From positions 20,460,001-20,524,000 of the forward strand of contig OZ116712.1 of NCBI GenBank assembly GCA_964199315.1: a stretch of DNA of 64,000 nt. Reading direction: 5' to 3'. This stretch comes from Orbicella franksi (lineage: Eukaryota). The stretch's first letter is position 1. The number at the start of each line of letters is the position of its first letter. Below are positions 40,424 through 46,726 of the stretch, in pieces. The notes beneath the pieces are model-generated. The model saw only the letters and a list, made by a program, of their open reading frames with translations. It had not been told where the DNA came from and made no database searches. The position numbers were made by a program, and so were the translations under genes.

Positions 40424-41041
40424 ATGTCTATTATGGAATACAATGGCGCTGCCATCATAGCGATGGTTGGTAAAGATTGCGTCGCCATTGCGGCGGATCG
40501 TCGCTTGGGAATTCAAGCACAGACGTTGTCTTGCGACTTTCAGAAAGTCTTTCAGATGGGAGATAAGCTGTTTCTCGGTCTTCCCGGCTTGGCGACAGAC
40601 GTGCAAACCGTTTCAAACCGGCTAACGTTTCGCAAGAATTTGTACGAGCTGCGAGAAAGCCGTCAAATCAAGCCTAAAACTTTCATGAGTATGGTGTCAA
40701 ACTTGCTCTACGAAAGAAGGTTCGGGCCATATTTCGTGGAGCCCGTGATTGCGGGTTTAGACCCGAAGACCAACGAGCCTTACATCGCGGCGTTAGACCT
40801 GATCGGGTGTCCGATGGAGACGAAAGATTTCGTGGTGAGCGGCACTTGCTCGGAGCAAATGTACGGAATGTGCGAATCCCTGTGGGAGCCAGATCTGGAG
40901 CCTGATGACCTGTTTGAGACCATCTCACAGGCGCTGATGAATGCTGTGGATCGTGATGCTGTCAGTGGCTGGGGTGGTATAGTGCATGTGATAGAGAAAG
41001 ATAAAATAACGACACGGACACTGAAAGCAAGGATGGACTAG
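40424..41041 (+). CDS. PSMB3: 20S proteasome subunit beta type-3, intronless, 205 aa
   Basis: Uninterrupted [34 protein letters not shown]...[16 protein letters not shown]...[30 protein letters not shown]. The true start is ATG 40424; the track ORF extends upstream from a non-ATG codon. Confidence 0.98.
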
Positions 41042-42965: not shown

Positions 42966-43328
42966 GGCCCCATCCACGCTGCGGCGGAGGAATTTGAAAA
43001 CAAAGCCTTGTTTCTACGGTTAGGTCTATCGTCCACACTAATCCGTCATAAAAACGGAGCTTTTCGAAAACGCTCTTGAAACCGAAGGAATTTGAAAAGG
43101 CCGGCTTTTCGTTTTCGTGCGGACGGAAAAAATTTTGAAAACGGAGCTTTTCGAAAACGATGACGTCACGATAATCACGTGATTTCCCTGACCGAGTTTT
43201 CCTCTAACACAAATCCAAAATGACCGGTGATTGTTGCGTTTTTAAATTCCTCCGGCGTAGTGTGGACGGAAAACACGAACCTCCGTTTTCATATTCCCAC
43301 GGCGTATGTAGCCGGTCTGTACGGGGCC
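42966..43328 (+). mobile_element. PIF/Harbinger-type MITE, copy 2
   Basis: tta|ggccccatccacgct ... gtacggggcc|ttc. Body is homologous to 29309-29682. Confidence 0.8.
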
Positions 43329-44837
43329 TTCAATCTTGCTTAGGAAAGCTTTCTTATGTGTCTTACTACAGTTGATTTCTTTAATTTTTTTTAGCAAGGT
43401 ACCAGTTCTCCTTATGAGGGGGCCGCTGTAATTGGCTAAGCTGTAGCGGCTCCCCTGGCAATTCTGTTTTGTTTTGCTGTCTGTTTTTTTTTTTTTTTTT
43501 TTTTTGCTTCCTCTTCTTTTTTCTTTTTCTTTATATGTAATAGAAGGCCAAAGCTTAATAAACAAATAAATAAATATGCTGGAATGCTTCACAAATATCT
43601 TAATATAAACCAAATTCCGAGAGATAAGGCGAGTACGTTATATCCACATGTTTTTGATATTTTATTACGTCTTTCTTGATGAAGTAACGCTAAAGGTCAT
43701 TTAGGACTCGGTGCTCCACTAGCGATTTCTCCTCACAATATCGAGGCAGTGTCCAGCTAGCAGGTGGCGAGAACAATGAAAACGATCAGCAAAAATAACC
43801 CGCAAACAAGAAAACAGTTTCCGAAACATTGTTGTGGAAAATCACCTTTTCGAACAAATTTACGTGATTTGCGCGTATTCGCAATAAATATGGTGTAAGC
43901 AAATTTTGTTCCCTTGAGGTAAAAATGATTCTGAGTTTTTTTTCAGAATTATCGCCTTGCTTCTTCCGTTTGCGCATCAAGAAAAAATTTTCACAAACAA
44001 TGTTTCTGCAACAATGTTCCTTAACGTTGCATCGCGTTTTCAAAACTAACCGTTGAAAGAAATACGTAGAATCAAATACCGGAATTATTATTCCGAGCTG
44101 CGGGCGCTGGAAGGGTTTTCAAATTACATTTGGTTGATGGTGATTTCGCGAAATGAAATGCGGAAACAAATTCAGCAGAGGAAATTGCCCGAAGCAAGCA
44201 GATAAAGAGAATTATCACGCAAGCAAATGCGTAATGTAGGTCATTAAAAGTGTATAGTTCAGCGAAGCAATTTCCTATATATCTAAAGTAAGCTAACAAT
44301 GAATTTTTACCTGAAAAGCTTCTACAGGTAACTCTATTGTAAGTTGCATCACTGAAGTAAAAAATTACCAAGGCAAATCAGAAACCCTCTATGATTCTGA
44401 TTATTCAAGATGCCACGAAGCCGGAATATGGAAAATTTCTGTTGTTTGATTTCAATGCTTAATAGAAAAGCGCTGAGTTGATCTCTTCTACTGTAATCTC
44501 CGTGGTACATTTTTTTTAGAAATTCACTCAGTTTTTAAATAAATACAAATCGAGTTCTTGTAGTGTTTAGGTTTATTTAATACTAGCTGACAGCATCCGC
44601 CATCAAATATTTGACTAAAGTGTTTTCTCTTTCAACGATTCATTGATCCGAATCATTTCTCAGAGTGATTTTCAAATTCTTGTCGCCAAACATTTCCCGG
44701 CTTCACAAATTTTCAAGTTATAATTCCTTCACTCCGCTTATGACAACAACAGTACTTATTTTAAAATCTTAAAATTCTGAGATCTAACTGGAGGTCACTG
44801 GAGAACCTGCAGCTGGAAAGATTTGAACCAATACATA

Positions 44838-45806
44838 TTACAATTCTAAATTTAGATCGATAGGGGAGTTGTCCAGGGCGAAAAATTTATGTTCAACTCG
44901 GCCATTCGGTTTAACTTTAACGACACGAAAACCTTGACTTTCTACTTCATCTGACTTTCCCAAAGAACTCGTTTGAATGATCTCTAATTCTTTGTCCTTC
45001 CCGACGCCATTTAAGAAACCGGCGAAAACGTATTTCGCGTTGGCTTCAACAAGTTTCGGGGCGATTTCTTGTCTGTCGCTAGAATCAATGTTTCCCAAAT
45101 CGTTCTCTTCGTCAATGGATTTTCTAAACCAGGGTATAGTTTGTAAAATAATTATTTGCTTGGGTGGGTTCACCTGGGATTCCAACAGCTTTGATTCCAG
45201 CCATTCTTGTTGTTCTGCCTTCAAATTTTCCGTCTCGGCGCTGGAGTGTTTGTAAAACGCCGTGTTCACGGCTAAAAATTGAACACCCTCTACCCAAAAA
45301 GCAAACCAGTCATCGCCAAAGGTATTACGATATGTCTCAAGGCTACCTAAGGTCGGTGGATCACCGCAGTCAGTCGGACCACAGACACACACAACCGGAA
45401 TTTCCGCGCTTAAATTCTCAAACGCGGACTTAAAACTCTCTAGCTGTGGAAAATATTCTTTCTCGTTCGGCTTCGCATTTGTATAATTTCCCTGCACCAG
45501 TAAAAACCTCGGTTTAGGTTTCATGTTGTTAAGAGCGCTCACGATTTTTTCCATGGTACGTTTTTCAGTCTCGCTGCTTTCTTCCGGGTGCGCGGCCGAG
45601 CCGAACTTCGGAGCAACAACTTGAACGAAATGAAACATTTCTTTGCAGGTGCCTTCACGGTATCTTGTAAATACAGGTAGCTTGTAATCTTTGGCTTTCA
45701 AAATTCGACTTTCCTCAGGAGTCTTTCCCGCTCTGCTCGCTTGATTCATTACCAACGCGTCAGGATGAATTTCCAAATTTAAGCCTAAGTTATCCGGACG
45801 AAGCAT
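44838..45806 (-). CDS. Intronless CPPED1-like calcineurin-like metallophosphoesterase fold protein with substituted metal ligands (probable pseudophosphatase), ~322 aa
   Basis: Open frame collinear with CPPED1-type proteins: LNNMKPKPRFLLVQG, IPVVCVCG, FGDDWFAFWVEGVQFLAVN, EQQEWLESKL, IPWF..SIDEE.D, VFAG, GFRVVKV. The start is ambiguous (ATG at 45881, 45806 or 45749). Confidence 0.85.
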   Translation of the reverse strand: MLRPDNLGLNLEIHPDALVMNQASRAGKTPEESRILKAKDYKLPVFTRYREGTCKEMFHFVQVVAPKFGSAAHPEESSETEKRTMEKIVSALNNMKPKPRFLLVQGNYTNAKPNEKEYFPQLESFKSAFENLSAEIPVVCVCGPTDCGDPPTLGSLETYRNTFGDDWFAFWVEGVQFLAVNTAFYKHSSAETENLKAEQQEWLESKLLESQVNPPKQIIILQTIPWFRKSIDEENDLGNIDSSDRQEIAPKLVEANAKYVFAGFLNGVGKDKELEIIQTSSLGKSDEVESQGFRVVKVKPNGRVEHKFFALDNSPIDLNLEL

Positions 45807-46349
45807 CTTCGTGTTCGACCGCCGCCGCTGGTTCGCAAAATTATGTCGTATAGTTTTTCTCCAATTCACAATATGAAACATATGGCTTTCGACACATGCG
45901 TACACTGTAATATGCAAATCCGTAGACTGATTAGCCTGTGTTTTGCAAAGATGTCAAACGTATGATTTAAATAATACGAAATACAACAAACCTACTCCCG
46001 CAAAGAAGGCTTATTTGAATAAGAAGGGCCCACATTAAGCTCCCTGTTTAAAGCGAAATTTTTCTACATTTGAACTTTTTTTTTGTATGTACACGGTAGG
46101 TATACGTATACTTGAGAAACGTGAAAAACTATCAGGACAAACGTCAATTATAAAGTCAAAATATTTGGAATGACAGTTTGGTTATTATATTCAAAATGAT
46201 ATGGAATTTAAAATGTCAATCATTTTGAGAACAGTTTTAAATATTTTAATATATACAGTTGAAAATCAGCCATTCATTATGCTTCAGTTAAAAATTATCG
46301 GAAAGAACTCTCATCTTGTTTCATAGATAGTGCTTTACGGGTGCTGCAA

Positions 46350-46726
46350 GGCATTGACCACACTACGTCGGAGAAATTTGAAATCGCAAATTTATCTCTA
46401 CGGTTAAGCCTACCGTCCACACTAATCCGTCAAGAAAACGGAGCTTTTCAACAACGCTCTTCAAACCGGAGGAATTTGAAAACGCCGGCGTTTCTTATTT
46501 AGTTTAAAAACTGAGATTTCTGAAAACGACGTATAGTCACGATAATCATCACTGAATCATGTGATTTCCCAGACCGAGTTTTCCGCAAACACGAATCCAA
46601 AATGACCGTTACGGTGATTGTTGCATTTTTTAAAAAAATTCCTCCGACGTAGTGTGGACAGAAAAACATTCGATGCGTTTTCCATTTTCCATTTTCAAAT
46701 CTCTCCGGTGTAGTGTGGTTGGGGTG
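46350..46726 (+). mobile_element. PIF/Harbinger-type MITE, copy 3 (more decayed)
   Basis: ggcattgaccacactacg ... tagtgtggttggggtg|taa. Body is homologous to copies 1 and 2. Confidence 0.75.

Follow-up and report, generated by a model that had tools for sequence, protein, structure and literature searches.

The window, that is, the whole 64,000-nt stretch of Orbicella franksi DNA that was analysed, carries on its reverse strand a transcribed single-exon gene for a CPPED1-like protein which has lost all eight ligand and catalytic residues of the active family, is predicted to keep the fold, and belongs to a conserved lineage of single origin that is held under purifying selection. The gene is best explained, with a probability of about 0.75, as an ancient, selectively maintained pseudo-phosphoesterase, a paralogue of CPPED1 working non-catalytically by binding, probably via its N-terminal motif. 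In the course of events proposed here, CPPED1 (a class-III-PDE-type protein phosphatase) would have been duplicated and the dead paralogue would have arisen once, before the split of two subfamilies; the calcineurin-like fold would have been retained and the whole dinuclear metal site lost, leaving the protein without metal-dependent phosphoester hydrolysis. The dead copy would then have been kept under purifying selection, with an intact CPPED1 alongside it in the three genomes that were checked. Its role may be that of a binding protein or adaptor, whose determinants would be a predicted-disordered linear motif at the N-terminus and a few clade-specific residues of the domain; the old active-site pocket would not be among them.

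The reading frame (322 codons plus stop; Table 1) was uninterrupted, with neither frameshift nor internal stop, and its start Met is common to the orthologues. An in-frame upstream ATG at 45879-45881 (−), which could extend the protein by 25 residues (MFHIVNWRKTIRHNFANQRRRSNTK), was considered as the true start (at 45881) and rejected, since six other species have stops in the upstream frame. A similar open upstream extension was seen in two related transcript-derived proteins (P0003 and P0005), and stops in the six genomic orthologues. Upstream of the start, the 5′UTR also has three short ORFs in other frames, whose ATGs lie at 46069, 46035 and 45897.

Transcription was assessed from assembled and raw RNA data. 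Two RNA-library contigs, one spanning 43544-46183 (2686 nt) and the other 43784-45953 (2169 nt), were colinear with the genome, so the mRNA contains no intron, and the gene stretch was detected in 14 RNA runs from 11 studies. In raw polyA RNA-seq (run X23), reads lay over ~44170-46005 only and were thus restricted to the gene, with a depth of 2-7 per orientation across ~44670-45838 and zero at 43501-44168 and 46006-46339. A second raw RNA run gave zero reads on the gene; expression is therefore modest or conditional.

Table 1. Features of the dead CPPED1-like gene and its product (positions in the window; residues in the 322-aa protein)
Feature	Position	Strand	Remarks
Transcript, approximate	43544..46183	-	5′UTR of at most ~380 nt, CDS, 3′UTR of ~1.0-1.3 kb, no intron
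CDS, dead CPPED1-like protein, single exon	44838..45806	-	ATG at 45806, stop 44838-44840, 322 aa
N-terminal region, residues 1-46	45669..45806	-	first ~30 residues absent from canonical CPPED1
N-terminal motif core LNLEIHPDAL	45753..45782	-	clade consensus [LM]-x-L-x-I-[PH]-x-[DE]-A
Predicted metallophosphoesterase-fold domain without metal ligands, residues 58-322	44841..45635	-	AF2 pLDDT 90
Ex-motif I VAPKFG (canonical ADxQFG)	45600..45617	-	D to A65, Q/H to K67
Ex-motif II QGNY (canonical CGDL)	45483..45494	-	D to N107
Ex-motif III CGPTD (canonical CGNHD)	45369..45383	-	N to P144, H to T145, D146 retained
Long helix, residues 190-212	45171..45239	-	clade-specific conserved E198, S205, L208, Q211
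Ex-motif IV LQTIP (canonical FQHIP)	45132..45146	-	H to T223
Ex-motif V AGFLN (canonical AGHYH)	45009..45023	-	H to F264, H to N266

When the 497-Mb assembly from which the window comes was searched in six frames, one other relative came up, in two pieces on contig C2. These are the two coding exons of an intact CPPED1 at G000:C2:14578386-14581251 (L002/L003), giving 298 aa when spliced across a GT..AG intron of 1,972 bp (phase 1, within the codon after FWVG). Its motifs read AADTQFG, CGDL, CGNHD, FQHIP and AGHYH; identity is 86% with the closest transcript-derived coral protein (P0220) and 68-72% with sea-anemone CPPED1s. The window protein was aligned to it over 289 positions at 38% identity, with the flanks kept around every motif.

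The published signature of CPPED1 and class III PDEs, D-[x]n-GD-[x]n-GNH[E/D]-[x]n-H-[x]n-GHxH (PMC8366450), fits the intact copy of the same genome and is absent from the window protein, in which the eight ligand or catalytic positions are occupied by A65, K67, N107, P144, T145, T223, F264 and N266 (0/8 kept); D146, the non-ligand acid of GNH[D/E], is the sole survivor. The corresponding residues (D, Q/H, D, N, H, H, H, H) were 99-100% invariant among 86 intact relatives, which had been picked for retaining them. Pfam PF00149 scored 16.4 bits on the window protein (E 0.013), below the gathering threshold of 21.5, and a precomputed Pfam match was likewise absent in 23 of the 24 full-length orthologues. 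With clear homology to an active enzyme family and its key catalytic residues missing, the protein has the make-up of a pseudoenzyme. The initial annotation, which had compared five motif strings with the human motifs, thus proved accurate in its description: each string was found at its place and is collinear with the intact CPPED1 of the same genome, the frame of about 320 codons and the conserved scaffold correspond to the 322-codon ORF and to the motif flanks shared with that copy, the N-terminal extension amounts to ~30 residues beyond the intact paralogue, and the lack of introns agrees with the colinear RNA contigs. The catalytically intact paralogue that it suggested looking for is the copy on contig C2.

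The fold was predicted with AlphaFold2 from a 52-sequence alignment (pLDDT 90, pTM 0.87; residues 1-30 at pLDDT below 55). The nearest models were those of vertebrate CPPED1 (TM 0.83, rmsd ~2.1 Å, 30-32% identity), and Foldseek against the PDB returned SMPDL3A, purple acid phosphatases, Rv0805 and GpdQ at E 1e-12 to 1e-10, with Mre11 and GAP50 (3tgh) as further structural matches, which places the protein in the calcineurin-like metallophosphoesterase superfamily at the fold level. A PDB sequence search with the window protein gave nothing at E up to 1. Metallophosphoesterase ligands sit at the ends of beta-strands, and the substituted residues follow directly after the predicted strands 58-64, 101-105, 138-141, 217-221 and 257-263; the ligands were placed by sequence alignment and predicted secondary structure rather than by residue-level Foldseek alignments. 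No hint of intact ligands shifted out of place was seen in the predicted structure; intact ligands at the active site were the outcome that the initial annotation had named as refuting it.

Orthologues were collected by a search of 5.8 billion proteins, which returned 25 relatives, 46-93% identical (a partial Nematostella model and 24 proteins of at least full length), the named ones coming from Actinostola, Nematostella, Exaiptasia and Porites. In all 24 hexacorallian orthologues the frame is intact and the ligands are lost, and six genomic contigs from other corals each carry the orthologue as one uninterrupted ORF. For the window gene and these six coral orthologues, pairwise dN/dS was 0.06-0.15 by Nei-Gojobori (0.07-0.21 by YN00) at dS 0.7-2.5, and the GY94 codon model gave an overall omega of 0.136 for the seven sequences, with 0.033 for codons 9-57 vs 0.159 for the domain. 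Coral and anemone sequences share 51-54% identity in the dead copy vs 68-72% in intact CPPED1; the dead copy, still clearly constrained, accordingly evolves about 1.6 times faster than its intact counterpart, so that its constraint is somewhat relaxed. Purifying selection and expression, both expected of a working pseudoenzyme, were thus found for the window gene.

Some database entries of this family deserve comment. Two dead CPPED1-like ORFs, P0195 (Porites evermanni CAH3190017.1, 754 aa) and P0019 (Actinostola QZH41_007320, 532 aa), are fused to unrelated N-terminal sequence; one of them is named UDP-glycosyltransferase and the other has a long unrelated N-terminal region, and both are probably merged gene models. 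The dead orthologue of Exaiptasia diaphana (P0177/P0178; KXJ25667.1, XP_020906013.1) bears the NCBI name 'serine/threonine-protein phosphatase CPPED1' despite its lost signature.

A profile search of 1.84 billion representatives placed the hexacoral family on top (545 and 390 bits), with intact CPPED1-like proteins from 239 bits down. Among the lower matches, P0039, P0065, P0073, P0102 and P0151 lack all or all but one of the eight residues and match the profile from the N-terminal extension onward. By a search with a profile of their own, these five were found to belong to a second dead subfamily of at least 16 sequences, seven of which are covered by full-length ORFs on contigs 0.2-2.3 Mb long; for P0039 the gene is one exon with an ORF of 900 nt on a 670-kb contig. 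The tentative attribution of one member to Aurelia, on which the taxonomic placement of the subfamily rests, comes from one cluster with a single EukProt identifier in the 'Seg…/GoldUCD' style, which we take to be the gene-ID style of the Aurelia genome. Searches of a protein atlas and of AlphaFold clusters returned 'CPPED1-like' only and no taxonomic range for the dead clade. ORFs with HTH_animal or GIY-YIG Pfam matches, resembling mobile elements, lie near the dead gene in two unrelated assemblies (at L004:1024-1674 and beside P0039) and are probably coincidental transposon content.

Maximum-likelihood trees (LG+C20 PMSF) joined the second subfamily to the hexacoral family in a single branch (100/99 and 100/98) that excluded every intact CPPED1, even those of cnidarians, with which the intact copy of the window's genome was grouped (98/96). 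The window protein is accordingly not an orthologue of animal CPPED1 and falls into a distinct dead clade (100/98). Both dead subfamilies share the derived residues L11, I13, P15, A17, T47, R48, E51, S205, L208, Q211, K251 and K297, so long-branch attraction seems unlikely to be the sole cause of their joint branch. The dead ligand positions were fixed differently, as N107 and T/S/N223 in hexacorals and as G107 and D223 in the second subfamily, which would fit an early loss of constraint followed by drift. The dead copy has a single origin and predates the split of its two subfamilies; Actinostola, Nematostella and the window coral each have a dead and an intact CPPED1 copy. Rooted with bacterial-type outgroups, the dead clade was placed outside cnidarian and bilaterian CPPED1, beside a long-branch nemertean sequence (91/69), and forcing it into one clade with cnidarian CPPED1 cost 6.85 log-likelihood units (AU p = 0.05, borderline). 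The duplication could have taken place on the cnidarian stem and been followed by acceleration, or it could be older than that stem.

The window gene and six orthologous loci are single ORFs, as expected for retrogenes, the intron-less copies of an intron-containing parent. Their intron-less state and that of P0039, beside an intron-bearing intact copy, fit an origin by retroposition, although the introns may instead have been lost; of the hallmarks of such an event, neither a polyA tract nor target-site duplications are expected to survive at this age.

The neighbourhood of the gene is conserved. A single-exon proteasome beta-subunit gene at 40424-41041 (+), coding for 205 aa, is separated by ~3.8 kb from the CPPED1-like gene, on whose 3′ side it lies, and is its neighbour in two other coral assemblies too, with a protein 98% identical to theirs; in one of them (L005) the orientation of the CPPED1-like gene is reversed with respect to the proteasome gene. 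Direct copies of a ~250-bp repeat at 42974-43226 and 46358-46608 (82-91% identical, spacing ~3,383 bp) bracket the window gene. Summed contig depths of this repeat exceeded 10,000 in RNA libraries, with many chimeric joints, and because of these depths it is taken as an abundant, widely transcribed interspersed element of SINE- or MITE-like kind. Its two copies were considered as the trace of a recent insertion and as target-site duplications; both readings were rejected, the former since the gene is syntenic and old and the repeat an abundant interspersed element, the latter since the copies belong to that element.

Constraint within the protein was mapped from the fraction of the commonest residue per column. 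Residues 1-30 are predicted to be disordered, and residues 9-46 form the best-conserved block of the protein, with a mean fraction of 0.88 vs 0.71 for the domain. The N-terminal core is followed by GKTPEE in hexacorals; its residues L11, I13, P15 and A17 vary little or not at all in either dead subfamily, and canonical CPPED1 lacks them. The peptide looks like a short linear motif, and no match to any known docking motif was found for it. The LxVP-type pattern of calcineurin docking sites was considered and rejected, as the place of the Pro is taken by His in the window protein and in other stony corals; L-x-I-P is present in anemone and second-subfamily sequences. An RVxF-type PP1 motif in KLPVF was also rejected, being a poor fit and not conserved.

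At the eight ex-ligand columns, the mean hexacoral top-residue fraction fell to 0.54, compared with a whole-protein mean of 0.73 and with 1.00 among intact relatives, and seven of the eight columns lie at or below the 55th percentile of conservation. The exception is N266, invariant in hexacorals; D223 and G107 are invariant in the second dead subfamily. Judged by these fixed residues, constraint has returned at some positions of the pocket, where something may still be bound. Scaffold residues around it are retained (F60, G69, G106, G143, Q222, G263), and no conserved substitute set of His, Asp or Cys residues was found across the dead family. The helix of residues 190-212 is a candidate new interaction surface, with its conserved residues presumably forming a surface patch.

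The initial annotation had put forward a selected, catalytically dead paralogue as opposed to a decaying pseudogene, and had proposed to look at orthologues, dN/dS and expression; all three spoke for its reading, with ligand loss shared by stony corals and sea anemones, dN/dS of ~0.1, no stop in any orthologue, and polyA reads and RNA contigs over the gene. Decay or neutral drift as a pseudogene, or an open frame left by chance in a retrocopy, would account for the missing introns, which are typical of retrocopies, and for the lost catalytic residues and the Pfam score below threshold. It would leave unexplained the intact frame in at least 24 hexacorallian and 16 further sequences, an omega of 0.136 at saturating dS, the polyA transcript, the kept microsynteny and the confident fold prediction. 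On dN/dS and on conservation across hexacorals and the divergent second subfamily, the pseudogene reading is refuted, and its probability is negligible. That the protein is still an enzyme, hydrolysing phosphoesters or performing other chemistry via a rebuilt, unconventional active site, is very unlikely: the fold and many pocket scaffold residues are kept, all hexacorals have N266 and position 146 still carries an acid (D or E), but at seven of the eight ligand positions the orthologues differ freely, each subfamily settled on residues of its own there, and a replacement set of His, Asp or Cys is missing. Catalysis by metallophosphoesterases needs the dinuclear centre, which binds both the nucleophilic water and the substrate phosphate (PMC8366450). 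Since the Asp, His and Asn ligands are missing, this centre could hardly form in the window protein, which, judged from its sequence, is very probably inactive as a phosphoesterase.

Binding can be envisaged in more than one way. As a substrate trap or decoy, the protein would hold CPPED1 phosphoprotein substrates (AKT- or PAK-type in mammals) in its old pocket and shield them from dephosphorylation. This is the classical mode of pseudophosphatases, the scaffold around the pocket is conserved, and human CPPED1 has defined protein substrates and interactors (PMC8366450); however, phosphate binding in this fold needs the metals and the lost His and Asn, and the pocket-lining ligand columns are among the least conserved, a poor fit to a conserved phospho-recognition site. 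Because the old pocket is the least constrained part of the protein, a pocket-based trap is less likely than binding via other elements, and we consider it improbable. Improbable, too, is a regulatory partner of intact CPPED1, a heterodimer tuning the activity or localisation of the active copy as dead myotubularins do with active ones. Pairing of pseudoenzymes with active paralogues is common, the related class III PDEs Rv0805 and GpdQ are oligomeric, and dead and intact copies coexist in the three checked genomes. Against it, no evidence of CPPED1 oligomerisation was found, and recombinant human CPPED1 has been described as monodisperse (PMC8366450). The function is most likely non-catalytic binding, to which other ligand-less metallophosphoesterase folds used as scaffolds offer the closest analogy. 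A bolder version of the pseudo-phosphoesterase reading, which we put forward as a tentative long shot, is that of an ancient, possibly pre-bilaterian, retrogene-derived adaptor. Its functional unit would be the peptide [LM]-x-L-x-I-P-x-[DE]-A in the disordered N-terminus, serving to dock or to decoy a signalling enzyme and so to recruit or sequester it, e.g. a kinase or phosphatase of the PI3K-AKT-PAK axis, which CPPED1 itself targets; the dead domain would be a second platform, possibly for active CPPED1. If this were true, the protein would regulate growth and survival signalling and would be specific to cnidarians.

Regulation by pseudoenzymes is a recognised phenomenon, and CPPED1 itself is little understood. 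A full-text literature search on CPPED1 combined with pseudophosphatase, coral or cnidarian returned nothing relevant, and the dead CPPED1 lineage is apparently a new, undescribed pseudoenzyme family. It offers a natural experiment, as the same genomes carry one paralogue bearing every ligand and one bearing none, the latter under purifying selection at least since hexacorals split from a second lineage, which may be medusozoan. The dead copy may reveal which CPPED1 surfaces matter for partner recognition, and Nematostella and Exaiptasia provide a tractable gene with which to ask what a metal-free CPPED1 fold and its N-terminal peptide bind. In a practical respect, the misnaming in Exaiptasia is likely to propagate, and enrichment analyses of coral and anemone transcriptomes may count the dead copy as an active phosphatase.

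Among known systems, the closest is human CPPED1 / CSTP1 (Q9BRF8), a calcineurin-like metallophosphoesterase of class-III-PDE type that dephosphorylates AKT1 Ser473 and PAK4. The window protein resembles CPPED1 in predicted fold (TM 0.83), length, shared scaffold residues and 38% identity to the copy of its own genome, and differs in lacking the eight signature residues, in its sub-threshold Pfam score and in its conserved extra N-terminus of ~30 residues; unlike the intact copy with its 1,972-bp phase-1 intron, its gene is intron-less and belongs to a separate clade. Scaffold pseudoenzymes with a metallophosphoesterase fold include Vps29 of retromer and the B subunits of DNA polymerases alpha, delta and epsilon, and GAP50 of Plasmodium and Toxoplasma is itself inactive. 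As in GAP50, Vps29 and the polymerase B subunits, the calcineurin-like fold is kept and the metal ligands are lost or incomplete, and the function of these proteins is protein binding; they belong, however, to other branches of the superfamily (purple acid phosphatase-like, Vps29 and Mre11-like) rather than to CPPED1, and their partners are known. STYX, MTMR9/MTMR13 and EGG-4/5 are likewise dead phosphatase paralogues under selection, acting as trap, anchor or regulator, but they have the Cys-based PTP/DUSP fold, in which phosphate binding survives the loss of the nucleophile, whereas the window protein is devoid of the entire phosphate-binding metal centre.
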